From IMG/VR virus record IMGVR_UViG_3300023202_000383, positions 62,001 to 126,000 of that record: a DNA stretch of 64,000 nucleotides. The stretch is one strand, 5' to 3'. The position numbers and the translations under genes were made by a program. The notes under the pieces were generated by a model. The model did no database searches, was not told where the DNA came from, and was given only the letters and a program-made list of their open reading frames with translations. Below, one piece after another: positions 1,349 to 62,138 of the stretch (its first letter is position 1; each line of letters starts with the position of its first letter).

Positions 1349-3016
1349 TTACTTACTCCAGATAAATTTGAAATGGCCAGCGTCCCATAATCTGCGATAT
1401 CTATTATTGAACATATTTTCAGATTCAGTAAGAGACGGATCGAAATTATCTAATTTGTCCAATAATTTATGTTTTTGAAATTGATGTCTATTAAAGACCA
1501 TATTGTCTTTGACATAACAATATCCAGGCTGTGTTATTGAATCAAGTTTGAATCCCAGTGCTTTATATAAATTTCCAGCAGAGAATCTTCTGTCGCAGTA
1601 TGTCATTATTGTTTTTGGGCCATGCGATCTGGTAAAATGTCTAAGCAATTTACTTGCGCCGCCAATAACGTTGTTGTTTATTTTGTTGGCAAATCTTGAT
1701 ACTTCCCATTCGTATTTTTTGTGTTTGTTGAATCCCATACAACAAACGATTTCATTATCATATGTAAGAGCATATTTAACCCTTGAATTTATATGTCCTT
1801 GCATATGGTTGGTGCTCATAAAATCACTGAAGTTGTTATTGTCGAGTTCTACAATGTCACATTTTCTGGCATATATCTTGTTACTCAACCCCATCTTGTT
1901 TTTTATTATCGACTTGATTATGTCAGTTTTGTCTTTCCATTCGTTCTCATAGATTTGATATACTAGATAGTTATTGCTAAGAGCTAGATCCGCTTTATAA
2001 TAATGTCTATATTTTTCATCTTTAGTCTCTTTTTTGTTAAATGAATGCCAATATATTCCATGCATTTCTATTCCAAAGTCACCGGCATTACAGTCTACTT
2101 CATATGGGCTAATTATTGTTCTATCATTTATTATTACTTCACGATATTGTTCAATGAATTCAATAATTTCTCTCTGTGGATTTGTCATGTTGGCAGAACA
2201 TTTAGAGCATCCGCCTTTAGAAACCATCAATCTATTTGGAGTTGTTCTAAATTCACCATGTAATTTGCATTTTATAATTATTTCATTTTTATCGCCAATG
2301 TATTCAGACAATACTTTATAATGATCTTTATATATTTCTCGTATTTGGTCTACGAATTTATTATGGTTCTTTTTCTTAGCTTCATTTGCACAATCAACAC
2401 AACCATGTCCGCGTAAGTGATTTTCAGCTATTTGCTTGAATTCACCGTGGGTCGGACATTTTATTTTAATTATTGATTTTCTTCCGTTCTTTAATATAAC
2501 ACTGTTATAATCGTATTTGTCACTATGGATTCTACGTGCCTTTTCGATGAATTTATCAGTGGTCAACATCAATTTTGCATTGCCGCATTTTGAGCATCCT
2601 TTGCCTTTTAAATGATTGGCTGGTCTTTGTCTAAAGGTATAATTGTGTTCCTTGCATTTTATTATTGCGAATACACCACTTACTGTCTTTTTATTTGTGT
2701 ATCCAAGATATTCGTATTTATCGCCGTGTATTTTCTTCGAATCGGCAACAAAACTATCGAAGTTTCTTCTGAGCGAATTAATAATTTTATGGCCCGATTT
2801 TTCATATATTAGACGATTTCTCTTTTTATAATCTATATACTGCATTCCTTCTTTTGATGATCTGGTTTGTATATTGTGTTTTTTGAGTTTTAATGATACT
2901 AATTTTCCAGACCTGCCCACTGATTTTCCGATTTCTGATTGGCTTTTGTGTTGTATTATGTACTGATCATATAGCCAATCATAATCATCTAATTTTTGTG
3001 GATTTAGTTTACTCAT
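1349..3016 (-). CDS. Free-standing Hef-like homing endonuclease (HTH + CxxHG/CxxC zinc modules + Vsr/DUF559-type nuclease + GNAT-like C-terminal domain)
   Basis: Repeated HxDKYDY..IKCPxHGEF..HLxGxGCxxC modules; EVD..GIEMHGIYWHS nuclease motif; C-terminal IYARKC..EVSRFA..GGASKL..TYCDRR..RRLWDAG; AT-rich. Confidence 0.8.
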   Translation of the reverse strand: MSKLNPQKLDDYDWLYDQYIIQHKSQSEIGKSVGRSGKLVSLKLKKHNIQTRSSKEGMQYIDYKKRNRLIYEKSGHKIINSLRRNFDSFVADSKKIHGDKYEYLGYTNKKTVSGVFAIIKCKEHNYTFRQRPANHLKGKGCSKCGNAKLMLTTDKFIEKARRIHSDKYDYNSVILKNGRKSIIKIKCPTHGEFKQIAENHLRGHGCVDCANEAKKKNHNKFVDQIREIYKDHYKVLSEYIGDKNEIIIKCKLHGEFRTTPNRLMVSKGGCSKCSANMTNPQREIIEFIEQYREVIINDRTIISPYEVDCNAGDFGIEMHGIYWHSFNKKETKDEKYRHYYKADLALSNNYLVYQIYENEWKDKTDIIKSIIKNKMGLSNKIYARKCDIVELDNNNFSDFMSTNHMQGHINSRVKYALTYDNEIVCCMGFNKHKKYEWEVSRFANKINNNVIGGASKLLRHFTRSHGPKTIMTYCDRRFSAGNLYKALGFKLDSITQPGYCYVKDNMVFNRHQFQKHKLLDKLDNFDPSLTESENMFNNRYRRLWDAGHFKFIWSK

Positions 3017-3137
3017 ATGTTATATTTGCCTCAGTATCAAATACTTTATTAATTATGGATTGTGTCGATCTTTAGACTCCGTGTGTTATGATAGTAAATT
3101 ATTCAAAAATATTATAGTAAGTATAGGAGAAATTATT

Positions 3138-3851
3138 ATGGCTATAATGGGACCATCCGAATTACCCTCTATTCTTAAAGTTAAGTCGGAAGAGCTTAAG
3201 AAGTATGTTCTGTCCAGGCTTGGCTTCCCGACTGTCGAGATAGAAATTGAAGAATCGCAGTTTGAATCAGTTCTAAGGACGACTGGTGATTGGATAGCTC
3301 ATTATTTTCCTAAAGAGCAGAAGCTCGCGTTCTTCAACACGGTTCCTCTGCAAGGCACTTATCCATTGCCAACTGATGCGTATTGGGTTCAAGAGGCAGC
3401 GTGGGATCCAGCAACAACTAGAATTGGTGATGTATTTGGTGCTGAATCATTCCTGTTTTGCTACAGCGGTGATTCCAACATAGTTAGAGAAGATGGAAAG
3501 CTTGTAAATATTAAAGAATGGGATGACTCATATAAGGCTCTTACCCCATATGGCCCGCGTAGGCTAGTCATAGAAGAACACCTTGAGTCACAGAGATTGG
3601 TATCTATTGAGTATGAAGGCGGTTCAATAGAATGCACACCAAACCACCCACTTAAAACGGACGGTATAAGTAACATGATAAATGGATGGGAATGTGCTGA
3701 GGATTGCAAATCTGTTACTTTAAACAATGGTAAGATTGTCCCCGTTATTGGTATTGCTGACATAGAACCTGGGCCAACATATACAGTTCATGCTATTGGC
3801 GCACATTGCTTATTTATATGCAAAGATGGTGAGTCAGTAGTAGGTCATTGA
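3138..3851 (+). CDS. Neck/head-tail adaptor (T4 gp13-like), N-terminal fragment (107 aa) fused to a C-terminal Hint domain
   Basis: GGAGA RBS before ATG 3138; ELKKYVLSRLGFPTVEIEI is typical of gp13-like N-termini; the sequence switches to Hint after GAESFLF. Confidence 0.8.
   Translation: MAIMGPSELPSILKVKSEELKKYVLSRLGFPTVEIEIEESQFESVLRTTGDWIAHYFPKEQKLAFFNTVPLQGTYPLPTDAYWVQEAAWDPATTRIGDVFGAESFLFCYSGDSNIVREDGKLVNIKEWDDSYKALTPYGPRRLVIEEHLESQRLVSIEYEGGSIECTPNHPLKTDGISNMINGWECAEDCKSVTLNNGKIVPVIGIADIEPGPTYTVHAIGAHCLFICKDGESVVGH
3459..3848 (+). mobile_element. Hint (intein-like) domain, 130 aa, ending at His with no terminal Asn or C-extein
   Basis: Block A CYSGDSNIV, block B SIECTPNHPL, block F-like PTYTVHA, block G-like VVGH, then two in-frame TGA stops. 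Confidence 0.8.
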
Positions 3852-3949
3852 TGAAACTCAGAACGTTATATGAATCTATTGATTCCATCGATTTGGATTT
3901 GCGCAATTTGTTAGATATCGCTGGGATCCGTGGTAAACAAAGATTGTGA
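3851..3949 (+). CDS. 32-aa micro-ORF MKLRTLYES...
   Basis: ATG overlaps the upstream stop (TGATG); the N-terminus resembles that of the next ORF. Confidence 0.4.
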   Translation: MKLRTLYESIDSIDLDLRNLLDIAGIRGKQRL

Positions 3950-3969
3950 GCCGATAATCGGACATTAAA

Positions 3970-4209
3970 ATGAAATTGAAGAATTTACATGAATCTGGTG
4001 ATTCTTTGATCCTTTTAAAGGACAAAGTTGAACGCATGAGATCAAGCACATTACACAAGATTGAGCAAGAAATAGAATTATTAGAAATCGGGTTACATGC
4101 ATTAAATAAAAATAAGCCGCATGTAACGGTAGATCATATGGAAAGATCTATTGATGCACTCAAAAAGCTTGCGGGATATCTAAACACATGGTGGGATACT
4201 AATTTATAA
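3970..4209 (+). CDS. Small helical hypothetical protein (MKLKNLHES...)
   Basis: 79-aa ORF in the operon orientation; MKLxxLxE N-terminus. Confidence 0.6.
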   Translation: MKLKNLHESGDSLILLKDKVERMRSSTLHKIEQEIELLEIGLHALNKNKPHVTVDHMERSIDALKKLAGYLNTWWDTNL

Positions 4210-4251
4210 TCAAAATATGATTGCCAATCATATTGCGGGCAAATATGATGT

Positions 4252-5262
4252 ATGAAACCAGCCAATTTTGTTGATATAGATATTAAAAAACTCAAAAAGT
4301 TCTTTCGGACCCATACATTAGGCCAATGTGCGAAAGAATTCGGCTGCTCCAGTGCAACAATAAAGCGTAAACTGAAAGCAGCCGGTGTTGATACTTCTAT
4401 CCACAACAATAGCAGATTAGCTAAAGACTTATTCAAGAAATCCAAAAAAGATACATCATTTCTGACCGAGAATTTTTTGTATGATCAATATATAATCCAG
4501 AATAAAGATTCTAAGACAATAGCTGAAGAAAACAAGTTACATTATAATACTGTGCGCAATAGGATACAGAAATATGGTTTAAAGAAATCAGCAAAAAATG
4601 TGTCAGCATCTATGATGGTTAGGCATTATGAAAAAACTGGATATATGCATCCAGGTCAGAGACCAGATGTAATAAATAAGATCAATAAAAGAAGATCAAG
4701 ATATTATTATAAACCAGCTAAATCTAGTAAAAATTGTTTATTTAAATCGCTGCATGAATTATGTTACGCATTACTTTTAGACAATGATGACGATGTTGAA
4801 TCGTGGGATTATGAATTAATAAAGATCCCATATATTGATAGATTGACTGGCAGGCACAGGATGTATTATGTCGATTTCTCCGTTCAGGCTAAATCGGGCG
4901 ATAGATGGGTTGAGGTTAAGCCAGCTGAGAATATGATTCCGCACGACAAATATTTATATGCGTCCCAAGCCGCAAAACAAGCTGGGATTATGTTTAGGGG
5001 GCTCATAGGGGATGAAAAAAGTCGGGGATATGAACTATTTAAATCTGGATATATGAAAGATAACATTGAATTTAGGAATATTAAAGATATAAAAAATGAC
5101 AAGAATTATACTCTATGGTTCAAAAATATCAATGAAGTAGGTAAAATAAAACACGACCACTATGTTTACAAAGAAGAGGTTGGGCCGTATGTCAGAGTCA
5201 AGCTTAAAGCAAAAGCCAAGAATAAGTCTGGCACCTCTAACACATATCAATGCTATAACTGA
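4252..5262 (+). CDS. HTH-containing TnsA-N/PD-(D/E)XK free-standing endonuclease
   Basis: Two HTH-like segments; FKSLHE..WDYE..IPY..YYVDF..WVEVKP nuclease motif. Confidence 0.75.
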   Translation: MKPANFVDIDIKKLKKFFRTHTLGQCAKEFGCSSATIKRKLKAAGVDTSIHNNSRLAKDLFKKSKKDTSFLTENFLYDQYIIQNKDSKTIAEENKLHYNTVRNRIQKYGLKKSAKNVSASMMVRHYEKTGYMHPGQRPDVINKINKRRSRYYYKPAKSSKNCLFKSLHELCYALLLDNDDDVESWDYELIKIPYIDRLTGRHRMYYVDFSVQAKSGDRWVEVKPAENMIPHDKYLYASQAAKQAGIMFRGLIGDEKSRGYELFKSGYMKDNIEFRNIKDIKNDKNYTLWFKNINEVGKIKHDHYVYKEEVGPYVRVKLKAKAKNKSGTSNTYQCYN

Positions 5263-5902
5263 CACGAAGACCAGTCAGATATTTCTATCTCACAAAGCGT
5301 TTGTTAGTAAAAAATGTAATGATATTCTAGTCGACGAGCTTGCCCATTTGGTATCTGGAGATGCTAGCCATGGCGAAGAATGGCAGGATTGCTGCAATAA
5401 TTTATATGATTCTGTACCAACACACAATCCAGAATTTGATGGATTAAAAAGAAGATTGGGGATACCAGAATATATCGGGGCGAACATCGGGAATATTACT
5501 GGAATTCAGAATGTATTGACCGATTATCATCTTCTACAGCAGTATAGACGATTTTCCCAGAAAATTTTGGGAACAGAGGGCCATTGGGAAGTGCTCGGAG
5601 ACAATAGAATTAGATTATATCCAACTCCCAGGGGCACATTCCCGGTAGTAGTGTTATATGTGCCCGTGATAACCAGATTCAGGTCACCTCAAGCGAGATT
5701 GCTAGCCATGGATATGCTTGTGGCTGAATCTAAGATAATGCTTGGAAATGCTAGGGCGAAATTTAGTTCAATTCCGTCGCCTGATGGTGGGTCGCTAACT
5801 CTTGATGGTGATACTCTTCGCCAGCAGGGCGAAGAGGAACGCGAGAAAATCGTTGAGAAGGCTAATCTTCTTGCGGAGCCTCTTCCTGTACTAAAATGGT
5901 AA
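5189..5902 (+). CDS. Neck protein (gp13-like) C-terminal fragment preceded by a zincin/SprT-like domain
   Basis: GAGGT RBS before ATG 5189; DELAH..SHGEEW motif (5333-5383); from 5483 IRLYPTP..KIMLGNARAKFSSIPSPDGGSLTLDGDTLRQQGEEE matches a gp13-like C-terminus. Confidence 0.75.
   Translation: MSESSLKQKPRISLAPLTHINAITDTKTSQIFLSHKAFVSKKCNDILVDELAHLVSGDASHGEEWQDCCNNLYDSVPTHNPEFDGLKRRLGIPEYIGANIGNITGIQNVLTDYHLLQQYRRFSQKILGTEGHWEVLGDNRIRLYPTPRGTFPVVVLYVPVITRFRSPQARLLAMDMLVAESKIMLGNARAKFSSIPSPDGGSLTLDGDTLRQQGEEEREKIVEKANLLAEPLPVLKW
5863..5900. repeat. 38-bp direct repeat, left copy
   Basis: TAATCTTCTTGCGGAGCCTCTTCCTGTACTAAAATGGT, identical to 7620-7657. Confidence 0.95.
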
Positions 5903-5936
5903 TTATTTTAGCTGAATAATTACTATACTTATAAAA

Positions 5937-7622
5937 ATGAAAGTTGCAGATATAAATGAGCAGGCGTTAGTTGATGATTATAAATCTGGCGCATCTCTCA
6001 GAGATCTTGCCAATAAGTATGGTGCCAGCAGACCAACAATAAAAAAGAGGTTGTTAAAAAATGGTATAGGTATATTGTCATCTACTGACTATATTGCGAA
6101 GTACAATAAGAAGCACAGAGATAAATCTAACAAAAAGAATCGTCAGGGTATTGTGAAAAATCAGGTAGAATATGTAGATATTAATAGAACCACTGGGGAG
6201 TTTGTTGAGCAAGCGGCATCTATTCATAATAGTAGATATGACTATTCGTTAGTAGATTATAAGACTGCTGACGATAAAGTAATTATAATATGTCCTATTC
6301 ATAATAAATTTAGACAAACTCCGCATAGCCATTTAAAAGGCCATGGTTGCCCAAATTGCGGCAGAGAGGCTGGTATTAGCAAGAGATCTATCAAATTTAA
6401 TGAATTTCTTAATAGAGCTGTAGAAAAGCATGGAAATAAATTTAGATATATTGAAGATAGCTATAATGGGCTGAATTGTGATATAACAATCATATGTCAA
6501 GAACACGGGGAATATAATCAGAATGCAAGACAACATTTGTATGGCAGGCAATGCCCTCGATGTGCTGGCGGAGGATATATATCGACAACTAATGAATTCA
6601 TAAGCAAGGCCGTTGAGGTTCATGGCGGCAAATTTGATTATAGCCGCGTTGAATATTCAAACAATAAAACTCCAGTTACAATAGTTTGTCCAGTGCACGG
6701 CGAATTTATGCAGAAGCCGAATGGTCATTTGAATGGCCATGGGTGCTTGATGTGTGCTAGAGATGCGACTTCTTCTGCTGCAGAGTTTGAAATAGTTGAA
6801 TTTCTTAACTCAATTGGCATTAATAGTATTCAACATTCCCGGAGCATCATACCACCCCTTGAATTGGATATTTTTGTTCCTGATTTTAATGTAGCTATAG
6901 AATATAATGGCATATATTGGCATTCATTTGGTAATTTGGAGGAAGAAGATAAATATTCGCATTGCTGCAAATTAGATCGTTGCAAAAAACTTGGAGTCAG
7001 ACTAATCCAGATTTTCGAAAATGAGTGGATATATAAAAAAGATATAGTAAAATCGATGCTAGTGTACTTATTCAATAAAAGTAATAACAAGATTTATGCT
7101 AGAAATTGCGATATTAAAGAGATATCTACATCTCAATATAAAAAATTTACTGATGCTAATCATATGCAAGGATATAGGGCCGCTGCCGCGAGGTATGGTT
7201 TATTTGATGGGGATGAACTTGTTGCTATAGGATCATTTAATAAATATGGTAGTAGAGATTATTGGGAAGTTATCAGATTCGCCAATAAATTGAATCACCA
7301 TGTTGTCGGTGGTTTTTCTAAGATATTGAAACATTTTATAAGAAATGACAAACCTAGTAAAATTGTAACATATGCTGATAGAAGATATTCAGACGGCTCA
7401 TTATATAACAAATGTGGTTTTAAATATATATCGACTACTGATCCAAATTACTATTATGTCAATGGACTAGAAGTGAATAGCCGCCAAAAATTTCAAAAAC
7501 ATAAGCTTAAAGATAAATTGCGCGAGTTTGATAAAAATTTGACGGAAGCGGAAAATATGTTTAATAATGGGTACCGTAGATTATGGGATGCTGGCAATCT
7601 TAAATACCAGTTTCTTATTTAA
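5937..7622 (+). CDS. Hef-like homing endonuclease with GNAT-like C-terminal domain
   Basis: HTH, three HxxxY/FDY..CPxHG..GCPxC modules, ELDIF..AIEYNGIYWHS, and the same C-terminal domain as 1349..3016. Confidence 0.8.
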   Translation: MKVADINEQALVDDYKSGASLRDLANKYGASRPTIKKRLLKNGIGILSSTDYIAKYNKKHRDKSNKKNRQGIVKNQVEYVDINRTTGEFVEQAASIHNSRYDYSLVDYKTADDKVIIICPIHNKFRQTPHSHLKGHGCPNCGREAGISKRSIKFNEFLNRAVEKHGNKFRYIEDSYNGLNCDITIICQEHGEYNQNARQHLYGRQCPRCAGGGYISTTNEFISKAVEVHGGKFDYSRVEYSNNKTPVTIVCPVHGEFMQKPNGHLNGHGCLMCARDATSSAAEFEIVEFLNSIGINSIQHSRSIIPPLELDIFVPDFNVAIEYNGIYWHSFGNLEEEDKYSHCCKLDRCKKLGVRLIQIFENEWIYKKDIVKSMLVYLFNKSNNKIYARNCDIKEISTSQYKKFTDANHMQGYRAAAARYGLFDGDELVAIGSFNKYGSRDYWEVIRFANKLNHHVVGGFSKILKHFIRNDKPSKIVTYADRRYSDGSLYNKCGFKYISTTDPNYYYVNGLEVNSRQKFQKHKLKDKLREFDKNLTEAENMFNNGYRRLWDAGNLKYQFLI

Positions 7623-8182
7623 TCTTCTTGCGGAGCCTCTTCCTGTACTAAAATGGTGACTTGCGACTTTATGGCATCTACGATGTCGCCAATAAGCGTG
7701 CCTTCGTAAGTCTTGCCTGCCTCTATCTTTTTGAGTGTTCTATGATGAGATGTTATGATAGTGCTGTGGTTGGATCTGTTGAGAAGCTTAGTTAGCTCTG
7801 GATAACTGAATCTCAACAGATCCCTTGCGGCGCATATTATAATATCTCTTGTTGTAGTGACTGCTCTTACTCTAGACTTACTAAGAACCTTTCTTTTGTC
7901 AACATTCATTATCTCGCAACCGATTCTAAGCACATCGTCGAATGTTGGTGCACGCGATAGCGTACCGTGGGTTGGTTTACTTGGTCTGTCGGTTTTGATG
8001 ATTGGCTTGCCTTCGGCTTCTTCAGCTCTTTTCCTAGATATAAAATATTCTAGGTTAAATTCAGGTTTTTTCCTTTCCGGCGGCGGCGTTGGCCATCCGT
8101 TTTCAACATCTGATTCATATAGCATCTGCTCTAGCTCTTCTTCGGTATATAATTCTGTTCTGTCCATGTAAACGTTGTTCAT
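7619..8182 (-). CDS. DnaA domain IV (Bac_DnaA_C)-like DNA-binding protein
   Basis: VLSKSRVRAVTTTRDIIICAARDLLRFSYPELTKLLNRSNHSTII parallels the DnaA C-terminal S..R.R.....RQIAMYL.R....S...IG..F.RDHTTV pattern. Confidence 0.65.
   Translation of the reverse strand: MNNVYMDRTELYTEEELEQMLYESDVENGWPTPPPERKKPEFNLEYFISRKRAEEAEGKPIIKTDRPSKPTHGTLSRAPTFDDVLRIGCEIMNVDKRKVLSKSRVRAVTTTRDIIICAARDLLRFSYPELTKLLNRSNHSTIITSHHRTLKKIEAGKTYEGTLIGDIVDAIKSQVTILVQEEAPQED
7620..7657. repeat. 38-bp direct repeat, right copy
   Basis: Identical to 5863-5900; the pair brackets the endonuclease gene. Confidence 0.95.
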
Positions 8183-34622: not shown

Positions 34623-36821
34623 ATGGGTAAATTAAAAGTACCTGAAGTAATAAATATACCTACCCAAAATATCCGTCAACTTTATTTTGACAACAATAAA
34701 GTTGAGGATCTTCTGGTCAGATATGTATGGACTGGATGCACGGATGTAAAAATGCGTGATGGGGTTATGGAGCATGCCGAAGAATTAATTAGGCAAATCA
34801 TTAGAGCTCATAATCTGCACAGAATATATCCTGGCCATGAAGAGTCGACATTTGGCGATTTGTTTCAGACTGCATGGGTTCAGATAGAAAAGACGCTATA
34901 TAAATATAAGGCCCGTCCCTACTGTGCATATTGCCATGATATGAATAGGCCTCAGGATTCGTGCTTGTATGTCCCTGGCCCAATCGAATATGGTATTCTG
35001 ACGCCAGAGGATGTGGCCAAGAAAAAACTCAAATGCCCTAACAAAAAATGTGAGAAATTTGGTAAAGCGCCGGACAAAATCATATATAGGGGAGAATCCA
35101 AAGTCTTCAACTTGTGGTGCGTCAGGCCAGAAACCACAATATTTGGAGTCAACGGTATAGATACCATTGATAATGTTTCTAGAAGAATTGGATATGATGA
35201 TAGAGAGGAAATGTGGACAATTGGTATGAATGGCAGCCCAAGAAAGGTTATTGCTGGAATTTCTAAGCCATTGACCAATGTTATCGATATCAGGACAGAA
35301 CTTGGTTACGAAATAGGATGTACACCAGAACATTCATTAATGTGCGATAGTGGATGGGAAAAAGCCAAGAATATTAAAATTGGCGATCTAGTAGCAATTG
35401 AATACAATCAACAATTTTATGTTGATAACAATAATATAGATATAGAATTAACAAAGAATAAACCTGGTTGCAGCGGCGTTCGGAATGATGATTGGCATCC
35501 TCCCAAAATGTTTAATGAAGAGTTATCATATATTTTGGGGCTATATGTGGCGGAGGGTTCGTGTTCAAAAACGCAAGTTGCTATATATAATATTGATAGT
35601 GATGTTGTAAATGCATTAGTAAATAACAATTTAGGGTTAAAATTTGTAAACCATCCGAAAAAACAGGTTACAATATGTTGCAATAAGAGGTTTTCTGAAT
35701 TTGTCGATAAACTTGGATTTGGAAACAAGGCCTGTGATAAACAAATACCACAAATAATGATGCGGATGTCTAAGGAAAACATCATAGCAATGATTAGGGG
35801 AATTGCTGATGGTGATGGTCATTCATCATCCCACAACGGCACTGTTGGATTTACTAGTACCTCAGTAAAATTGATAGACCAATTGAGAATGCTTTTGTTA
35901 AATCTTGGGTTACTTACTAAAATAAGTGTAGATAATAGAACAATCAATGAGTTTAGAAAAGGTAATAAAACTTATAAATCTAACAAGAGTATAGCATACC
36001 AATTGCAATTGCCGACAGATGATTCAAAAAGATTTTATGATACTGTAGGATTTGGTATTAAGCGTAAGCAGGCCAAACAAAATAAATTAAAGCAACCGAG
36101 GAGACACATATATGGTCTAAATGATAAATTCAGAAGATTATATAATAAATATGGCTGCGGTGATCTTGGATATGATAAGATTAGGACTGTTATACGAACG
36201 GATAGGACAAGATGTGTATTATCTACTGCTATAACTATGCTACATAATTGGTCTAAATTTTCTGATGATAAAGATTATAAATCTATAAAGAATATAATAG
36301 ACAAGCATATCTCGAGCGGCGTCAGATCTATATTGGTCCCAGTTATAGGCATTAGGGAAGGGATGAGTCCAGTACATGAAATATCTGTTGACTCAGAGGA
36401 TCATTCATATATAGCAAATGGTATAGTATCACACAATTCACAAGTTGCAAGAACTGTGATATTGGCATATATCAAAAAAGAAGGCAGAGATTATAAGAAT
36501 TCCGGTGCATATAAGAAGCACCTTGAAAGTCAGACTAGGTCTGATAGCGATAAGATGAATAGGTTCCTGGATGAAGCAACCGAGATATTGAAGTACAATA
36601 ATACCCATGCTGAGATATTAGAAGCGTTGAAGCACATAGTAAGAACTGATTCCAGACCATATGAAGGGATAATTGGCAAGCTTGTCAAGCATTCTGGGCA
36701 ATCCAGAGCCCAAGTCGCGGGGTTCTTGAGAATGATAAGGCTGAGATGCGACGAATTCACTGATTCGCCTCTAAATGAAGATATCGATAGAGAAAAGTCG
36801 TACTCTACAGATGACGAATAA
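34623..36821 (+). CDS. Late-transcription sigma-like factor (gp55-like) with zinc-ribbon insert and intein
   Basis: Spliced exteins give YFDN..DLFQTAW..KVFNLW|SQVARTVILAYIKKE, like the gp55-type FxYFTQI..AFL..IxKE region. Confidence 0.6.
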   Translation: MGKLKVPEVINIPTQNIRQLYFDNNKVEDLLVRYVWTGCTDVKMRDGVMEHAEELIRQIIRAHNLHRIYPGHEESTFGDLFQTAWVQIEKTLYKYKARPYCAYCHDMNRPQDSCLYVPGPIEYGILTPEDVAKKKLKCPNKKCEKFGKAPDKIIYRGESKVFNLWCVRPETTIFGVNGIDTIDNVSRRIGYDDREEMWTIGMNGSPRKVIAGISKPLTNVIDIRTELGYEIGCTPEHSLMCDSGWEKAKNIKIGDLVAIEYNQQFYVDNNNIDIELTKNKPGCSGVRNDDWHPPKMFNEELSYILGLYVAEGSCSKTQVAIYNIDSDVVNALVNNNLGLKFVNHPKKQVTICCNKRFSEFVDKLGFGNKACDKQIPQIMMRMSKENIIAMIRGIADGDGHSSSHNGTVGFTSTSVKLIDQLRMLLLNLGLLTKISVDNRTINEFRKGNKTYKSNKSIAYQLQLPTDDSKRFYDTVGFGIKRKQAKQNKLKQPRRHIYGLNDKFRRLYNKYGCGDLGYDKIRTVIRTDRTRCVLSTAITMLHNWSKFSDDKDYKSIKNIIDKHISSGVRSILVPVIGIREGMSPVHEISVDSEDHSYIANGIVSHNSQVARTVILAYIKKEGRDYKNSGAYKKHLESQTRSDSDKMNRFLDEATEILKYNNTHAEILEALKHIVRTDSRPYEGIIGKLVKHSGQSRAQVAGFLRMIRLRCDEFTDSPLNEDIDREKSYSTDDE
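35118..36437 (+). mobile_element. Intein with LAGLIDADG endonuclease (440 aa)
   Basis: W|CVRPET, GCTPEHSL, LGLYVAEG, RGIADGDG, SYIANGIVSHN|S. Confidence 0.95.
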
Positions 36822-38859: not shown

Positions 38860-41800
38860 TTATCTGTTATAATTAATATTATGTTTTCGGTGCGAGATCA
38901 CTTGTCTCGTATCTATCGGTCTACCACCTAGCTGGTTGGTAAATTTCGCTAGCTCTTGCTCCGGCGTCATTTGGTTATTGTTCATTGTCATCATAGTATA
39001 TGGCATCAATATATTGGGGTCATTTGTGTGCACCAGCTGAGCTTGATGCTGAGCCAAATTCGCTCGCTGCTTGGCTTCCAATACCATATCTTGGTCTTTA
39101 TTCTTGATTGGGATAAGCCCAGCTGCATCTTCTGCTACAGCATCATTAATGGCTACGAAGGCTAGAGCTGCGGCCATAACGAGGTCGTCGTGATTACCTC
39201 GACCTTTTTGCGCCCCAGTTTTACCGGTCTCGAATCCTAGTCTATTTCGTTCTTTGACGTAAATCACTAATTGATCTAACAGTCTTTCACTTCTTATATA
39301 ATATCCGTCACCTTCATTTTCTGATATGCAGATTTTCAACATCTTGTTTAATGTTGCTTTGCCAGATTGGCTAGTTGCAAATCCTATTGGGCCTAGCTGG
39401 TTTGTATTATGCCTCTTTTTCCTCCATAGAGATGGATAAAGCAGATCTTGCATGTCGTCTATAAAGCTGTCACCTATGCCAGTACGTTCTATGCATGCTA
39501 ATGCATTATTGTACCATCTTCCTAAATAATCGACTATTTTAGAGAATGTGTCTGGTCTGACCTTACCCAAGTATTCAGCAACTTGTTCCATCGTGTCTAC
39601 GTCGAATATCTGTATCGCTGAAAAGTCTTGGTTCTTGCCGGTTGCAATATCGACTCCCATTACATAAGTGTGTCCTGGGTTGTCGCTTACTAGTTTGCCG
39701 TTTTTCAGGACAGATTTATCTGGTTTTACTGGTTTTCTCCAGATTCTTAGACCTTCATCTGCTGTGTTTCCTCTAAACTCTAGGTGTTCTTTGTTGCCCG
39801 TTTGCGGATGTATATACTCAACAATATCGGCAGGAATTTCAGGTAGAAACGATTCATCCACCATTTTCATCACTCTAGCTATCGCGGTTGGGCTAAGGAC
39901 TGTACTGCCGCTGCCTATAAACTCAGCGAGAATTTCTTGCCTGAATAGGTGAGATTCACCCTTCTGTTGCATGTCACGGTATTCGCCTTCAAGCCAAGGC
40001 GACCAATATGGTCCGTATTTTTCTATTCTTGCTTTATCGCGGCATTTTTCAATGTCGTCTATTGGAGCAAGCCTTTTTTGCTCTCCGCTTACGTCATCTT
40101 TCCATTCAAGCGCCCAATCCATATCCCACCAATTTATTTCGATGGCATTAAAGTTATTCAAATCTTTCTTTGCGTCAGTCCATGTGCTCCAGTACCAGTT
40201 GCCAAGGCCATTTGGAGTCTGGTGACCTATAAATCCATTATAAGATACTGAATGTGCCCACTTGTCTTCGTTGTTGTCCGGTAGCGAGAAATCATAGACT
40301 TCTTTATTTGAATAATCTACAGATTCTATTTTAGACCAAATTATTTTGTCGTTTATATAATCACCATATTTAGAAACGTCAATATTGTTTTGAGAAGCAA
40401 CATTTAACAGTTTTAAAAGTACCTTTCTGCTTACATTTTTCTTGTGTCGAGCCTTATTGCTCAATACGACATTCAAATTTAACCCATATTTGTGTTTTAG
40501 TGTCCAAGTACCAAATGGCAAATCATCAAATATTTCTTTACATATTTTGTGCCCGTTTGGTATGATATCATAACTAGTGCCACTTCTTGTGCCTTCGCAC
40601 AGCGATCGGTTTTTTTGTTTTCTATCAAATCCAAATTTTATTTCATCAAAAAAGATTGATGAATAATATTTACTGCATTCTATAATATAGGTATCATGAT
40701 TGTGCTGTGATACCTTGGTCTTTTTATTGTTCTTAATATATTCATTTGCTGATTCCGCTGTTCTTATGCGTTGTGTTGTAATTACCCCGAAGTTGTTTAA
40801 TATGATACGTATTTGTTTGGCTAGATCGGCCGATGTTGTTGTATATCCAACTAGCCCATCGCGTTTTCTGCTGTGGCCATCTCCGTCATACATTCCAGAC
40901 AGTAGTGATGCGATGATTTGTTTGCTGCATTGCATCAATCTGTTTGGTATTCGCTTATTCGGCGCATTGGTATGTTCAAATCCTAAATGCAACATTAGTT
41001 CCCACAAATTAGTGGAAAAAATTTGCCAATGGATTCCATCAGTATTTGTCCACGGCAATTTTAGTCTGTCAAGAACGCGAGATATATCATCGCCGCAGGT
41101 TATGGTAATCTTGTGGCTATTGCAATTTTTGGAACTATATACAGACCCCTCGGCAATATACAGGCCGAATAAATAAGCCAAATCTGGTGTGATTTTGGCT
41201 GGGTTAAATGGGTACTTAACGTTTGTTGATGGGTCAAATCCAGTTATGCTAGTGTTGTCACCCCAGCAGTTCATGCCATATTGTGTCGATAACCAATCGC
41301 CTATCTCTAATTCAGACAATGCATACCACCCAAATCCTTTGTTTTGTTTATAGGCATACATTTGATGTGCTAGCGACCCTTCAATTTCGCCATATCGTGT
41401 TGTCAACTTTTTTGTATCTGCCACTCCGCTGTTGTAGAAAAAACCACCTTCTCTTAATTTATTACGACCCAAAACGTTGTATTTGGGAACAGCATATGTG
41501 CCAGATTGTTTGTCGTTTATAAAATTATCGACTAGCGTTGGACCTTGATCAGTTACTACATATGTGCCCTTAGGAACACATGATATGACTATCAGAGCAC
41601 CACCATGCATGAGAGTAGACCTACCGGCAGCCCACATCGCTTCCATGTGCGGCATGAACGCTGCCTCGTCGATGATATTCAATGATGAGGCGTATGATCT
41701 AAGTGTATCTGGCGACGATGTCAGAGATCGTATAGTAGATCCATTGGTGAATCCGAACTGATGCTCGTTATCGATTGGAGTCTGCCATATCTGCTTCATC

Positions 41801-42144
41801 CAATCTGGGAGATTATTATATACAAATTTTACGTTTCTATTTAAGAATTCTTTAGCTTCGAGATCTCTTTTGGAGACTATTAGTATTGTCTTATTGCTAT
41901 GGAACATAGCAAACCATAAACAATATGCCCCAGTAAGCGTAGAGACGCCCGTTTGTCTACATTTTTTAAAAATATTGAATTGGTGATTCCTAAAATCTTC
42001 GAGACACCTTTTTTGATAACTAAATAATTGGAAGTCGAGCAATCCAATGCTCGGGTGTTTGATCTTGCAGAATGTCTGTATAAAGTATGATACTGATTTC
42101 TTACATCTACCAATCAGTATTTTTAGTTTATCTGCGTCTGACAT
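38860..42144 (-). CDS. terL: Terminase large subunit with intein
   Basis: KCRQTGVST Walker A, IIDEAAF Walker B, VIS|TPNG motif III, YVMGVDIATG and HDDLVMA nuclease motifs. Confidence 0.95.
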   Translation of the reverse strand: MSDADKLKILIGRCKKSVSYFIQTFCKIKHPSIGLLDFQLFSYQKRCLEDFRNHQFNIFKKCRQTGVSTLTGAYCLWFAMFHSNKTILIVSKRDLEAKEFLNRNVKFVYNNLPDWMKQIWQTPIDNEHQFGFTNGSTIRSLTSSPDTLRSYASSLNIIDEAAFMPHMEAMWAAGRSTLMHGGALIVISCVPKGTYVVTDQGPTLVDNFINDKQSGTYAVPKYNVLGRNKLREGGFFYNSGVADTKKLTTRYGEIEGSLAHQMYAYKQNKGFGWYALSELEIGDWLSTQYGMNCWGDNTSITGFDPSTNVKYPFNPAKITPDLAYLFGLYIAEGSVYSSKNCNSHKITITCGDDISRVLDRLKLPWTNTDGIHWQIFSTNLWELMLHLGFEHTNAPNKRIPNRLMQCSKQIIASLLSGMYDGDGHSRKRDGLVGYTTTSADLAKQIRIILNNFGVITTQRIRTAESANEYIKNNKKTKVSQHNHDTYIIECSKYYSSIFFDEIKFGFDRKQKNRSLCEGTRSGTSYDIIPNGHKICKEIFDDLPFGTWTLKHKYGLNLNVVLSNKARHKKNVSRKVLLKLLNVASQNNIDVSKYGDYINDKIIWSKIESVDYSNKEVYDFSLPDNNEDKWAHSVSYNGFIGHQTPNGLGNWYWSTWTDAKKDLNNFNAIEINWWDMDWALEWKDDVSGEQKRLAPIDDIEKCRDKARIEKYGPYWSPWLEGEYRDMQQKGESHLFRQEILAEFIGSGSTVLSPTAIARVMKMVDESFLPEIPADIVEYIHPQTGNKEHLEFRGNTADEGLRIWRKPVKPDKSVLKNGKLVSDNPGHTYVMGVDIATGKNQDFSAIQIFDVDTMEQVAEYLGKVRPDTFSKIVDYLGRWYNNALACIERTGIGDSFIDDMQDLLYPSLWRKKRHNTNQLGPIGFATSQSGKATLNKMLKICISENEGDGYYIRSERLLDQLVIYVKERNRLGFETGKTGAQKGRGNHDDLVMAAALAFVAINDAVAEDAAGLIPIKNKDQDMVLEAKQRANLAQHQAQLVHTNDPNILMPYTMMTMNNNQMTPEQELAKFTNQLGGRPIDTRQVISHRKHNINYNR
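40219..41580 (-). mobile_element. Intein with LAGLIDADG endonuclease (454 aa), C-terminal Gln
   Basis: S|CVPKGT, FGLYIAEG, SGMYDGDG, VYDFSL..GFIGHQ|T. Confidence 0.92.
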
Positions 42145-42747: not shown

Positions 42748-45738
42748 ATGGCTTGGCAACTATTTGATAGAATTAGAGGGTTTACTAGATCTGCTGGTAT
42801 ATATCAGCAGGACCGCCTGCTTCAAGACCAGCCTTCTATAGATAAGTTAATTTCTGGCAATCAATTTCTAGACTTCAATCAGCAGCAAGCACTTCTAGAC
42901 CAGACCAATCTTCAAATAAATAGACTTGAGCGATACAAAGATTATGACCAGATGGATGAAGTTGGCGAAGCGTCGCTCGCGTTAGACCTATATGCTGATG
43001 AGTCATCGATAGTTGACCCAGAATACAAGCATACTGTCATTATAAAGTCTGCACATTCTTCTGTAAAACATGCTCTTGAAGACCTGTTTCACAATCGAAT
43101 ATTAATAGATAGAATAATCAGGGCGATGGTGCGGTACTTGGTAAAGTACGGCGATGCTCCGTTTGAAATCATACCAACGACTGATAGAGATGGCGTTGCG
43201 ACCATCAAATTCATAAATGTTTATAACTTCACTAGGGTTGAAACGAAGTATGGTGATCTAGTTGGCTTCTTCCATCAAGATGAGATGGCGGCTGAGCCGA
43301 CGTTTCTGCACCCGTGGCAGGTTGTGCATTTTAGGCTTACTGAGTATGGTAATATTTATCACCCTTACGGGCGGTGCGCCGAATTCGGCACTAGGGTTTC
43401 CACGCCATCCGGATATAAGAATATTGAAGATTTTAAACCTGGGGATGATGTATACTGCTTTGCTAACAACAAATTAGTCCCGACTAAGGTGGTTGCTGCA
43501 TGTCATTCTGGCGAGAAGAAAATATTAAAAATTAAGACGCGGCATTTTGAAAATAGATGTAGCGAAAATCATCCAGTAATGGTTCGGCAGTGGAATCTGA
43601 AGCCGTTTAAGTATGGCAAGAAGTGGTTCGCTGATCTTGTCTATAAGAGAGCTGACGAAGTTGAGATTGGCGATGAATTAGTTGTTCCTAGAACACCTGA
43701 ATCTAATAATTATAATATTCTTGGCAATATCGGCAGCATGAACGTTGTCGCTGATGAAAAATTCGCGAGATTATTCGGATTCTTGATTGGCGATGGATGG
43801 TTGATGCGCAGGCATGGCAAAAACACCGGTGTTGAATTTGCTAATGGAGTAGACTCGAATCTTAATAAATATTATGGAGAATTATTGGATAATTATTCTC
43901 CTAATAAGATAAGGTCTTATAAGAAAAATGGGTCTCAAAGCACTTTAGTAGAAGATGCGACACATACATGCTCGAAAGATTTTGCTGATTTCTTAGAGAA
44001 AAAATGTGGATTCATTCAGGGTTCATACAATAAGAGAATCCCGCAGTGGGTATATTCTAGCCCAATGTCGGTCCAGAAGGAATTTATCCGTGGGTTGATT
44101 GATTCGGATGGTAGTAGTAATGTTGACGAATGGAAGTGTGAAAGGCTGCAGCTTGAGCTATCAAATTATGAATTAATAAAAGATGTTAAGATGCTTCTGC
44201 ATAAAATGGGTCTCAAGTGTGGGCAGATTCTAAAAAGAAACCGAGACGAAGACACTACTATAATCCATAGCCAAGAGTATGATAGACTCGATTCGTGGAC
44301 AATATACTTTTATAGATCAGACTTATTTGAAGCTGCTGGAAGACATGTGCAGCATTTAGCTGGTTCTCGTGGGTACAACTCTCGCAAGAAGGAATCTTCT
44401 AAATTTGGCAAAGATGTGATTTTTGAACCAGTAGTGTCTATAGAAGATGGCGGAACAAAGCCAACTGCTGATATTCAAGTTGATCACCCAGCATCAAACT
44501 TCGTTGCTGATGGTGTTGTTGTTCATAATTCTATCTTAGAGGGCGGAAGAAAGGCGTTCAAACAGTTGCGCCTTATGGAAGATGCAGCCCTTATATATAG
44601 AATCACGAGGGCTCCGGAGAAGAGGTTGTTCTCGATACCTGTTGGTAATATTCCAACTAAAGAAGTGCCTGAATATATTCAGGCTATCGCTCGGCAGTTC
44701 AAGAATCAACGATTCTACGATCCAAGGACGGGCGAATTTAACGAGAGGTATTCGCCGCTTATTCAAGAGGATGATTTCTTCTTGCCCAAGCGACCTGATG
44801 GAAGTGGCCCTGCAATTGACATACTCAAAGGTGCAGAGAATCTTGATCAGATAGCCGATATAGACTATTTCAAGAAGAAGATGGTCGCGCCTATGCATAT
44901 CCCATTTAGCAGGGTTGGCATAGGTGAAGGTTCTGGTGAAAATAGCGAGAAGTCTTTGGCATCTGAACATTCTCAATTTGCCAAGGCGGTTCAGTACGTC
45001 CAAAGAGAGATCGCCATAGGCTTACAGAAGGTCGCTATATGCCACCTGGCTATGGCTGGATATACTGCAAAGCAGATTAAAGATTTCTCGATTACGATGA
45101 CCGCCACTAATGCTATCGATGAATTATATAGAATAGAAACATGGTCTGGCAGGACCAGGGTCATGGCCGATCTCAAGGACCTTGGTTGGTTCCCGGACGT
45201 GTGGATTGTCACGAGATTTACGGATCTTAGCCCGGACGAGATTCAAGAACTCAAGACGATGGAGTCTCAGCTTGGAAGTGATGAAGGGGTGGATGAAGAG
45301 GCTCTTGGTCTTGGGGGAGGGGGAGGCGGAGGCGGTGGGATAGATGATCTGCTTGGCGCAGAAGAGGGCGAAGGTCTTGATGAGCTTGAAGGCCTTGAAG
45401 CCGAAGGAGAGGGTGGAGAAGATGGCGAGGCTGAGGATTTAGAGGATCTTGGTCTTGGCGAGAAATCTATGTATAATGCATATAAGGAAAAGAAAGTTCT
45501 GCAAGAACACAAGTTGCAGAGAAAGCGTAGAATAATAAAGGAATTCGTAGAGAAGATAAGAAACATGGGTATGAATAATGGGGGCGAGAAAGCTAATGAG
45601 ACATCTGCCTACGAAAATCTTAGGATGGAGAATGAGTTTGACGGACTAGAATCCAAGTCGAATATTGGTGGAGGTGTTTTAGAAGAAGATATTAAGAGCG
45701 AAGCCAAAGAAGAATATAAGAAAATATTGAGTGAATAA
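42748..45738 (+). CDS. Portal protein (gp20-like) with intein
   Basis: ALDLYADES, PYGR|SILE..KQLRLMEDAALIYRITRAPEKR, EDDFFLP, DIDYFKKK. Confidence 0.95.
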   Translation: MAWQLFDRIRGFTRSAGIYQQDRLLQDQPSIDKLISGNQFLDFNQQQALLDQTNLQINRLERYKDYDQMDEVGEASLALDLYADESSIVDPEYKHTVIIKSAHSSVKHALEDLFHNRILIDRIIRAMVRYLVKYGDAPFEIIPTTDRDGVATIKFINVYNFTRVETKYGDLVGFFHQDEMAAEPTFLHPWQVVHFRLTEYGNIYHPYGRCAEFGTRVSTPSGYKNIEDFKPGDDVYCFANNKLVPTKVVAACHSGEKKILKIKTRHFENRCSENHPVMVRQWNLKPFKYGKKWFADLVYKRADEVEIGDELVVPRTPESNNYNILGNIGSMNVVADEKFARLFGFLIGDGWLMRRHGKNTGVEFANGVDSNLNKYYGELLDNYSPNKIRSYKKNGSQSTLVEDATHTCSKDFADFLEKKCGFIQGSYNKRIPQWVYSSPMSVQKEFIRGLIDSDGSSNVDEWKCERLQLELSNYELIKDVKMLLHKMGLKCGQILKRNRDEDTTIIHSQEYDRLDSWTIYFYRSDLFEAAGRHVQHLAGSRGYNSRKKESSKFGKDVIFEPVVSIEDGGTKPTADIQVDHPASNFVADGVVVHNSILEGGRKAFKQLRLMEDAALIYRITRAPEKRLFSIPVGNIPTKEVPEYIQAIARQFKNQRFYDPRTGEFNERYSPLIQEDDFFLPKRPDGSGPAIDILKGAENLDQIADIDYFKKKMVAPMHIPFSRVGIGEGSGENSEKSLASEHSQFAKAVQYVQREIAIGLQKVAICHLAMAGYTAKQIKDFSITMTATNAIDELYRIETWSGRTRVMADLKDLGWFPDVWIVTRFTDLSPDEIQELKTMESQLGSDEGVDEEALGLGGGGGGGGGIDDLLGAEEGEGLDELEGLEAEGEGGEDGEAEDLEDLGLGEKSMYNAYKEKKVLQEHKLQRKRRIIKEFVEKIRNMGMNNGGEKANETSAYENLRMENEFDGLESKSNIGGGVLEEDIKSEAKEEYKKILSE
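43375..44529 (+). mobile_element. Intein with LAGLIDADG endonuclease (385 aa)
   Basis: R|CAEFGT, CSENHP, FGFLIGDG, RGLIDSDG, NFVADGVVVHN|S. Confidence 0.95.
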
Positions 45739-61940: not shown

Positions 61941-62138
61941 ATGCCAGCAAAAAGCGAAGCACAACGTAGGGCAGCTGGGGCGGCCCTCAGTGCAAAAAGA
62001 GGTAAGACCAGTCCTAAGACCTTAAAAGGTGCATCTAAGCAGATGCATGATTCTATGACAGAGAAAGAGCTTGAAGATTTCGCCAGGAAAGAGTCGTTTG
62101 AATTGGCATTGGATACTGTTTTAGAATCAATAGGCTGA
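61941..62138 (+). CDS. DUF3008-like small protein
   Basis: MPAKSEAQRRAAGAALSAKRG..LKGASKQM..SMTEKELEDFA; GGAGG RBS. Confidence 0.75.
   Translation: MPAKSEAQRRAAGAALSAKRGKTSPKTLKGASKQMHDSMTEKELEDFARKESFELALDTVLESIG

Follow-up and report, generated by a model that had tools for sequence, protein, structure and literature searches.

A jumbo-phage neck gene divided by a mobile element that places a complete, Asn-less predicted Hint domain on one half and a predicted mini-metalloprotease domain on the other

Hint domains are found in several self-processing proteins. Fractured phage genes with natural split inteins, such as gp41-1, NrdJ-1 and IMPDH-1, consist of two ORFs with a free-standing homing endonuclease gene between them; the insert sits in a highly conserved motif and a Hint-family domain is fused to the end of the first half (Dassa et al. 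2009, PMC2677866). Type A bacterial intein-like (BIL) domains act at sites with no +1 nucleophile: they are contiguous, free the downstream amine by cyclisation of their own C-terminal Asn, and in the proposed ligation this newly freed alpha-amine attacks the N-terminal thioester (Dassa 2004; Aranko 2013, PDB 2lwy; reviewed in PMC4031507). Hedgehog/Hog autoprocessing domains are at the C-terminal end of a precursor and keep Cys1 and TxxH but no Asn, and their ester must be resolved by an outside nucleophile. Minigluzincins (proabylysin, projannalysin and selecase; MEROPS M95) and the SprT/Wss1-like proteins are zincins of about 100 aa with HExxH plus a downstream His, and in the proabylysin zymogen the C-terminal tail lies in the cleft (PMC5557861).

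We analysed a window of 64,000 nucleotides (positions 62,001 to 126,000 of the IMG/VR record IMGVR_UViG_3300023202_000383), in which a T4 gp13-like neck gene is interrupted by an insert of 2,024 bp that lies exactly between the codons of Phe107 and Asn108. The locus has the following parts:

3138 to 3458, forward strand: N-terminal 107 aa of the gp13-like neck / head-tail adaptor protein (N-extein), ending DVFGAESFLF
3459 to 5482, forward strand: the whole inserted element
3459 to 3854, forward strand: complete predicted Hint domain of 130 aa, fused in frame to the N-half, without C-terminal Asn and followed by TGA TGA (3849-3854)
3970 to 4209, forward strand: ORF of 79 aa with unknown function
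4252 to 5262, forward strand: free-standing putative homing endonuclease of 336 aa, with N-terminal HTH repeats and a TnsA-like PD-(D/E)xK nuclease domain
5189 to 5482, forward strand: predicted minigluzincin/SprT-like zincin leader of about 98 aa, fused in frame to the C-half and ending in YIGA
5483 to 5902, forward strand: C-terminal 139 aa of the neck protein (C-extein), starting at the invariant Asn (NIGNITGIQN...), plus the stop codon

The N-half ORF (ATG at 3138 to 3848, 237 aa) continues from the neck sequence into a domain that starts with Cys (TGC, 3459-3461), carries TPNH (block B) and ends with VVGH. The C-half ORF spans 5162-5902. Its likely start is the ATG at 5189 rather than the upstream ATG at 5162, as it is preceded by a Shine-Dalgarno-like sequence (GAAGAGG) and matches the N-termini of homologues; its leader carries DELAH...SHGEEW and is followed by the neck sequence, ...YIGA|NIGNITGIQNVL. 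The first-pass annotation, which had described these two ORFs, was correct in its observation: all of its sequence statements hold.

The N-half aligns to residues 1-107 and the C-half to residues 108-246 of intact homologues; those of 246-260 aa used for the N-half carry PF26809. Intact relatives such as P0084 (246 aa) read ...GAESFLF|NIGNVTGIQN..., thus SFLF and NIGN are adjacent, and 107 + 139 aa gives 246 aa. Distant cultured relatives are annotated as head-tail adaptor Ad2 or neck protein. Searches of cultured phages found no near-identical DNA, and tblastn with the N-extein gave no match; only the C-extein reaches head-tail adaptor Ad2 genes of jumbo phages.

The layout is a family and far beyond chance: the N-half with a Hint domain followed by a stop occurs in at least 77 protein clusters and the leader-bearing C-half in at least 97. 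Of 80 IMG/VR loci, 17 carry an insert of 1,564-3,414 bp at exactly this codon boundary and 55 have none (gap of 0); a further insert is present at the same boundary in locus L004. All 15 distinct inserts analysed are tripartite with a large middle ORF, and most of those scanned have TnsA-like and/or HTH domains, on either strand. In the window, the middle ORF matches PF08722 (E 5.6e-9), whereas the 79-aa ORF has no Pfam or PHROG family and is variable cargo not seen in the other inserts. PHROGs also has no family for the Hint domain or the leader. Neither a contiguous (unsplit) Hint-zincin precursor nor an Asn-bearing cis version was found at this site among the hits of up to 415 aa or the 80 IMG/VR loci. 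A misassembly is rejected: single contigs of two DNA runs span 2900-5892 and contigs of a third run tile the same region, with no variants or joints, and the layout recurs in many samples. Full-text literature searches found no description of a gene split into a Hint-stop and a zincin-start half, and the layout is apparently undescribed.

The Hint domain is predicted to be a complete HINT fold (AF2 pLDDT 94-97 over residues 108-237). Foldseek matched the model to BIL and intein structures (E 1e-7), with the BUBL BIL domains as the best fold match: to BIL2 (6y75, E 1e-7), to the gp41-1 intein (6riz, TMt 0.82, rmsd 2.3), which is among the best structural matches, as is the BIL structure 2lwy, and to Hedgehog (1at0). 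Only the residues of the first intein step are kept: residue 1 is Cys in 66 and Ser in 10 of 76 Hints, and T167, N169 and H170 are nearly invariant. The last residue is His in 73 of 83 clusters and Asn in none, with the stop directly after in nearly all, one residue short of the intein Asn.

The leader is related to minigluzincins both by sequence and by predicted fold. A profile search against the PDB matched selecase (3.3e-5), proabylysin (5.8e-5) and projannalysin (all matches 3e-5 to 9e-4), and the model (AF2 pLDDT 91-95) matched proabylysin (4jiu; Foldseek prob 1.0, VIA Z 7.1) with residues 2-99 aligned to residues 11-105 of the chain. E50, H53 and H61 are invariant in 50-99 relatives, and [H/D]ExxH-x7-H is present in about 87 of 97. 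The window's own copy reads D49-E50-L-A-H53...H61, and its Pfam SprT-like score is 13 bits, below the cut-off of 25.6. The Asp in place of the first His, which had made the first-pass annotation doubt protease activity, is a clade trait: 25 of 97 relatives have D and 67 have H. The leader is found only fused to the neck protein: all 11 clusters at E<1e-10 among 1.84 billion representatives are the neck-fused form or fragments of it, and the next tier, its nearest sequence neighbours, are stand-alone SprT-like proteins. A MAFFT column match suggested that the leader tail (RRLGI..IAA) is a copy or mimic of the N-extein tail (TRIGD..FLF), but this was rejected as hhalign gave a probability of only 0.2.

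The element differs from a canonical (class 1) split intein in three defining features, although it has the predicted HINT fold, Cys/Ser1 and the block B TxxH: the fold is not divided, as the N-half alone aligns to the whole gp41-1 intein and the C-half leader is a zincin rather than an IntC; there is no terminal Asn (block G His-Asn); and +1 is not Cys, Ser or Thr but an Asn that is invariant in 99 split and in intact homologues. As in other fractured genes, the two halves are separated by a free-standing putative homing endonuclease gene, but this is TnsA-like rather than GIY-YIG or Vsr-like. With type A BIL domains it shares the absence of a nucleophilic side chain at +1, but it lacks the terminal His-Asn that cyclises to free the C-flank, it is split by a putative homing endonuclease, and a zincin on the other chain is the only candidate for freeing the amine. 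Unlike in Hedgehog/Hog domains there is no sterol or adduct recognition region, as the ORF stops at the last strand of the predicted HINT fold; the element is mobile and found in phage, and the expected nucleophile would be a protein N-terminus. With the minigluzincins the leader shares a C-terminal tail that, as modelled, lies in the cleft as in the proabylysin zymogen. From the described minigluzincins the leader differs in that it is fused to the front of a structural protein at a homing site, with DExxH in one clade that includes the window.

We consider it about as likely as not that the protein is rejoined. What the analysis shows is the insertion of a Hint domain, an endonuclease gene and a mini-zincin at this boundary, a gene that, judged from its reading frames alone, is expressed as two precursors (N-half-Hint and zincin-C-half), a Hint domain that keeps the first-step residues but has neither terminal Asn nor +1 nucleophile, and a leader of the minigluzincin/SprT type whose C-terminal tail, carrying the Ala|Asn junction, is modelled as a strand that ends where the zinc-binding tail of proabylysin ends. 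All steps of processing, including peptidase activity and ligation, are inferred. In this view, the Hint domain converts the Phe107-Cys108 peptide bond into a (thio)ester, and the zincin cuts its own tail once, in cis, at Ala98|Asn99 of the C-half precursor, exposing the alpha-amine of the neck residue Asn108. The two neck halves would then dock as in the intact fold, placing the amine in the open +1 socket next to the Hint's C-terminal His, and aminolysis would rebuild ...SFLF-NIGN... (junction ...ESFLFNIGNITG...), yielding a scarless neck protein of 246 aa, free Hint and free zincin. This is the chemistry proposed for type A BIL domains, with the Asn cyclisation replaced by a protease on the other polypeptide.

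Several data are consistent with this model. The insert lies exactly at FLF|N. The modelled junction strand comprises residues 96-100, and model residues 2-99 align to residues 11-105 of proabylysin, whose terminal Val105 binds the zinc (PMC5557861), although cleavage exactly at Ala|Asn is inferred from alignment ends and not from coordinates. Both modules are under purifying selection (dN/dS 0.12-0.36 where dS is measurable; synonymous sites are saturated in most pairs and only a few ratios could be computed), and they are maintained although a stop codon and a start codon would be enough for plain two-piece expression. The split bisects the most conserved motif of the protein, thus chain continuity plausibly matters. 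Co-folding, one of the checks proposed beforehand, predicted docking of the two neck halves (ipSAE 0.36 against a best control of 0.00, rated as weak support) but gave no confident Hint-zincin or Hint-Asn contact. Against the model, Hint and leader subtypes are shuffled among loci (Spearman 0.11), with no sign of a co-evolved Hint-zincin interface, and the window's own zincin has Asp in place of the first His and a Pfam SprT-like score below threshold. Moreover, an oxyester, as expected for the ten Hints that start with Ser, is a poorer acyl donor for an amine, and minigluzincins are often inactive in vitro. The interpretation of the first-pass annotation is partly supported: its structural premises (Asn-less Hint domain, zincin leader, halves that abut in intact homologues) were all confirmed, but its central claim, covalent re-ligation by aminolysis, was not shown.

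The main rival, also proposed in the first-pass annotation, is trimming without ligation: the Hint domain would remove itself by hydrolysis of the (thio)ester, the zincin by autoproteolysis, and the clean fragments of 107 aa and 139 aa would assemble non-covalently into a working neck protein. We regard this as less likely, but it remains open. The extein halves are the only confidently predicted interface, free recombination of Hint and leader modules is expected if each acts only on its own chain, N-terminal cleavage is the dominant side reaction of Hint domains lacking a C-terminal partner (PMC4031507), and phage genes split by free-standing endonucleases without inteins are known (PMC2677866). 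However, two pieces would not need two catalytic modules kept under purifying selection in so many diverged clusters, neither the strictly conserved truncation after the terminal His nor that His itself has an obvious role in plain hydrolysis, and the break lies inside the most conserved motif.

The other explanations are improbable. Hint domains without Asn and +1 nucleophile use external nucleophiles, and the (thio)ester could pass the N-half to a side chain of the C-half, another virion protein or a small molecule, as in Hedgehog, giving a branched or modified product; but intact homologues need no such adduct, the insert position predicts a scarless native join, the leader has no conserved Cys or Lys beyond the metal site, and the in-frame zincin would be unexplained. 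Slightly less likely still is that Asn108 serves as a one-residue IntC: joining the Hint end (..VH) to the C-extein start gives the canonical His-Asn, a striking coincidence, and this Asn could cyclise and release Ile109 to attack the thioester, leaving a product without the Asn. Yet the Asn is attached to the leader and not to the last strand of the Hint, its invariance in intact homologues makes its loss unlikely to be tolerated, and the conserved zincin would have no role. Least likely is RNA-level repair, the other alternative of the first-pass annotation, with a group I or II intron or another RNA event removing 3459-5482 and the Hint and zincin frames as relics. The endonuclease-in-the-middle layout does resemble intron-borne homing genes, but no intron covariance model matched at E<=10 in 2900-6100 and none at gathering score in 13 related loci; the endonuclease is on the opposite strand in the loci L004, L016 and L020 (the largest middle ORF of locus L075 is also antisense), and Hint and zincin keep their catalytic residues, with dN/dS well below 1 and always in frame with the exteins.

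Inteins are thought to be confined to sites with Cys, Ser or Thr at +1, and split inteins to a divided Hint fold. This element occupies a site with an invariant Asn and pairs a whole predicted Hint on one chain with a predicted protease on the other, across dozens of diverged jumbo-phage lineages. In the most far-reaching reading, which we hold only tentatively and as slightly less likely than not, it is a natural, Cys-independent and scarless protein trans-ligation system: a truncated Hint domain would supply a thioester-activated C-terminus, and a single-turnover mini-metalloprotease would unmask the alpha-amine of the partner and may also position it and act as general base, forming a peptide bond at an Asn junction where no intein could work. 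That would make it a fourth kind of Hint-based processing, beside inteins, BILs and Hedgehog, spread by a homing endonuclease. If the halves are rejoined, the element shows a new natural solution to protein ligation, widens the range of sites that selfish protein-level elements can invade and offers a template for traceless, cysteine-free ligation tools. If they are not, it is still a new kind of self-cleaning gene fracture, in which two unrelated autoprocessing domains erase the scars of an endonuclease insertion. In either case, two hypothetical-protein families, about 237 aa each in this window, gain an annotation.

The region is the structural module of a T4-like jumbo myovirus, with genes for a gp15-like tail protein, the sheath, the baseplate and the gp20 portal, and contigs that carry the same proteins reach 256-332 kb. 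The gp13-like neck gene is present in two ORFs, which are separated by two further ORFs:

3138-3851: N-terminal half, 107 aa of neck sequence ending GAESFLF, which runs without a break into a 130-aa domain that begins with Cys (3459), carries TPNH and ends VVGH, followed by TGA TGA
between the halves: an ORF of 79 aa, and an ORF of 336 aa with HTH motifs and a TnsA-like nuclease domain (PF08722, E 5.6e-9)
5162-5902: C-terminal half, about 98 aa with DELAH...SHGEEW, then ...YIGA-NIGNITGIQN... and 139 aa of neck sequence; the likely start is ATG 5189, which has a Shine-Dalgarno-like sequence and matches the N-termini of homologues
3459-5482: the complete insert

Intact homologues of 246-260 aa read ...GAESFLF-NIGN(I/V)(S/T)GIQN..., thus the insert sits exactly between two codons and 107 + 139 aa gives 246 aa. 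The description of the split gene in the first-pass annotation is correct in every detail. No alternative genetic code was needed or used. Single contigs of two DNA runs span 2900-5892 with no variants or joints and contigs of a third run tile the region: a misassembly is excluded.

The genome is dense in selfish elements. Two paralogous homing endonuclease genes of about 555-561 aa (phrog_559/3339) flank the neck gene, and the downstream one is bracketed by a 38-nt direct repeat of the 3' end of the neck gene. This repeat shows doubled depth and a contig branch joins 5900 directly to about 7659, as if an endonuclease-free form or a repeat collapse exists. The portal gene and an ORF of 732 aa carry canonical LAGLIDADG inteins, and an ORF of 1,094 aa on the minus strand also has a LAGLIDADG domain. 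Upstream of the neck gene, an ORF of 226 aa ends in three tandem copies of a motif of about 20 aa (..AYHYALDVIKGRWPE.EETIK.DP.W..). The positions are:

644-1324: 226-aa ORF with the three tandem repeats
1349-3016 (-): homing endonuclease gene upstream of the neck gene
5863-5900 and 7620-7657: 38-nt direct repeat
5937-7622 (+): homing endonuclease gene downstream of the neck gene
34623-36821: 732-aa ORF with intein
38860-42144 (-): 1,094-aa ORF with LAGLIDADG domain
42748-45738: portal (gp20) gene with intein

The split layout is found in a whole family. A search of 5.8 billion proteins identified at least 77 clusters of about 235-240 aa in which the N-terminal half is followed by the Hint domain and then a stop, as well as intact proteins of 246-260 aa. 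In this N-half family the residue after FLF is Cys in 66 and Ser in 10, the last residue is His in 73 of 83, and the stop follows at once in nearly all. The C-terminal half with its leader is represented by at least 97 clusters: Asn at the junction is invariant and the residue before it is Ala in 63 and Gly in 15. Of 80 IMG/VR loci, 55 have the two codons adjacent and 17 have an insert of 1,564-3,414 bp at exactly this boundary. All 15 distinct inserts that were analysed (14 related loci plus the window) are tripartite, with a Hint domain of 128-133 aa and a stop, a large middle ORF on either strand, and an in-frame leader with [H/D]ExxH. The one Hint domain of different length is the read-through copy of the related locus L016 (157 aa; 6321-6795, protein P0069), in which the terminal His is replaced by Glu and the frame reads on for 27 more residues; this may be a decaying copy of the module. 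Most of the middle ORFs scanned have TnsA-like and/or HTH domains. The endonuclease-type middle ORF is on the minus strand in loci L004, L016 and L020; in L075 the largest middle ORF is also antisense, but shows only a TPR-like match.

The same neck gene hosts canonical inteins (C...HN-S) at three other sites in relatives (proteins P0078, P0243 and P0105; L004, 8569-9333): GAE-S, four residues before the Hint site, NIGNI-S, five residues after it, and YRKF-S. Some genes carry one of these in addition to the Hint/zincin element. In one sublineage (L004, 8500-8530, and L086, 3285-3310; proteins P0244 and P0247) the frame of the C-terminal half breaks 12 codons after the junction, at CAA AAT ATA TAT TA(G): there is an extra TA in an (AT)n run, and the conserved neck sequence (L[LV]DYHLLQAYR...) continues in the -1 frame. 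As this occurs in two divergent contigs from different sources, it suggests a conserved frameshift or dinucleotide slippage rather than an error.

The 5' module is predicted to be a complete HINT fold. The AlphaFold2 model has a pLDDT of 94-97 and Foldseek matches it to the Tetrahymena BIL2 domain (E 1e-7) and to the whole gp41-1 intein (TMt 0.82, rmsd 2.3 A); the Clostridium BIL and Hedgehog structures also match. The module keeps the residues for the first intein step (Cys/Ser1, T-x-N-H), but has no conserved block F Asp and no Asn.

The 3' module is a zincin by sequence and predicted fold. Glu50, His53 and His61 (numbered from the ATG at 5189) are invariant, while the first ligand is His in 67 and Asp in 25 of 97 relatives, and the clade of the window has Asp. 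The model is confident (pLDDT 91-95), its best structural matches are the minigluzincins proabylysin, selecase and projannalysin, and the leader profile also finds these proteins by sequence alone (E 3.3e-5 for selecase, 5.8e-5 for proabylysin and 9e-4 for projannalysin). Among 1.84 billion representative proteins, the 11 clusters at E<1e-10 are the neck-fused form or fragments of it, and the next tier consists of stand-alone proteins of about 150 aa that pass the SprT-like threshold of Pfam. In the model, the junction peptide I-G-A-N-I forms a strand (residues 96-100), and model residues 2-99 align to residues 11-105 of proabylysin, whose C-terminal Val105 lies in the cleft and binds the zinc (PMC5557861). 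Judged from these alignment ends rather than from distances, this fits a single cut in cis between Ala and Asn that would leave a product-inhibited protease.

Both modules are under selection: dN/dS is 0.12-0.36 for both in the few pairs with unsaturated synonymous sites, while dS is saturated for most pairs. There are also signs of recombination. A shorter leader type of about 60-70 aa, which lacks the first strand of the zincin, is found in the insert regions of the related loci L012, L014, L015, L019 and L021 and is shared by loci with quite different Hint subtypes (Cys 'CFPKAT' and Ser 'SFGGGS'). Between L019 and L021 the Hint domains (81% identity) are more alike than the N-exteins (71%), indicating module shuffling and movement of the element between neck alleles.

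The element is not a canonical split intein, as the fold is not divided, there is no terminal Asn and the +1 residue is an invariant Asn. It is not a type A BIL, as the Asn is missing, and not a Hedgehog-type domain, as nothing follows the Hint. It is also not an intron: no intron model matches at E<=10 in the window or at gathering score in 13 related loci, the endonuclease can lie on the opposite strand, and both flanking frames are conserved as proteins in frame with the exteins.

What the sequence data establish are two predicted precursors, each with a domain of an autoprocessing type at the broken end; how they are processed is inferred, and this includes the catalytic activity of both modules and the ligation itself. 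In the most likely scheme, Hint makes a (thio)ester at Phe107, the zincin removes itself and exposes the alpha-amine of Asn108, the neck halves associate, and the amine attacks the ester and restores ...SFLF-NIGN.... Association of the neck halves is the only interface that the co-fold supports (ipSAE 0.36 against a best control of 0.00, rated 'weak support'). The chemistry has a published precedent: for type A BILs, the free amino group of the C-flank is proposed to attack the N-terminal thioester (PMC4031507), and here the amine-releasing Asn cyclisation would be replaced by a protease. The interpretation of the first-pass annotation, which had proposed this rejoining by aminolysis, is partly supported.

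The main alternative is that both halves are merely trimmed and assemble non-covalently. Ligation is favoured by the persistence of both catalytic modules in dozens of diverged lineages, although a stop codon and a start codon would be enough for expression in two pieces, and by the position of the break, which bisects the most conserved motif of the protein. Moreover, the Hint is almost always cut off exactly at the residue that precedes the intein Asn and this residue stays His; as the two termini are adjacent in the HINT fold, this would leave an open +1 socket beside Cys1. On the other hand, no contact between Hint and zincin was predicted, Hint and leader subtypes are shuffled among loci, which fits modules that act independently, and some Hints use Ser1; these observations count against ligation or are neutral. 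On present evidence, we regard covalent ligation as about as likely as not and trimming with non-covalent assembly as possible but less likely. The remainder is shared between transfer onto another nucleophile, a variant in which the host Asn serves as the intein Asn, RNA events, or something not considered.

The layout is a 'fractured gene' in the sense of Dassa et al. 2009 (PMC2677866), but with a whole Hint on one side and a protease on the other. Full-text literature searches found no description of such a pairing, PHROGs has no family for either module, and the source databases give these proteins no informative name (unnamed or 'hypothetical protein'). Hint-based mobile protein-processing elements as such are already known. 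If ligation is confirmed, the chemistry would be categorically new for a natural system.
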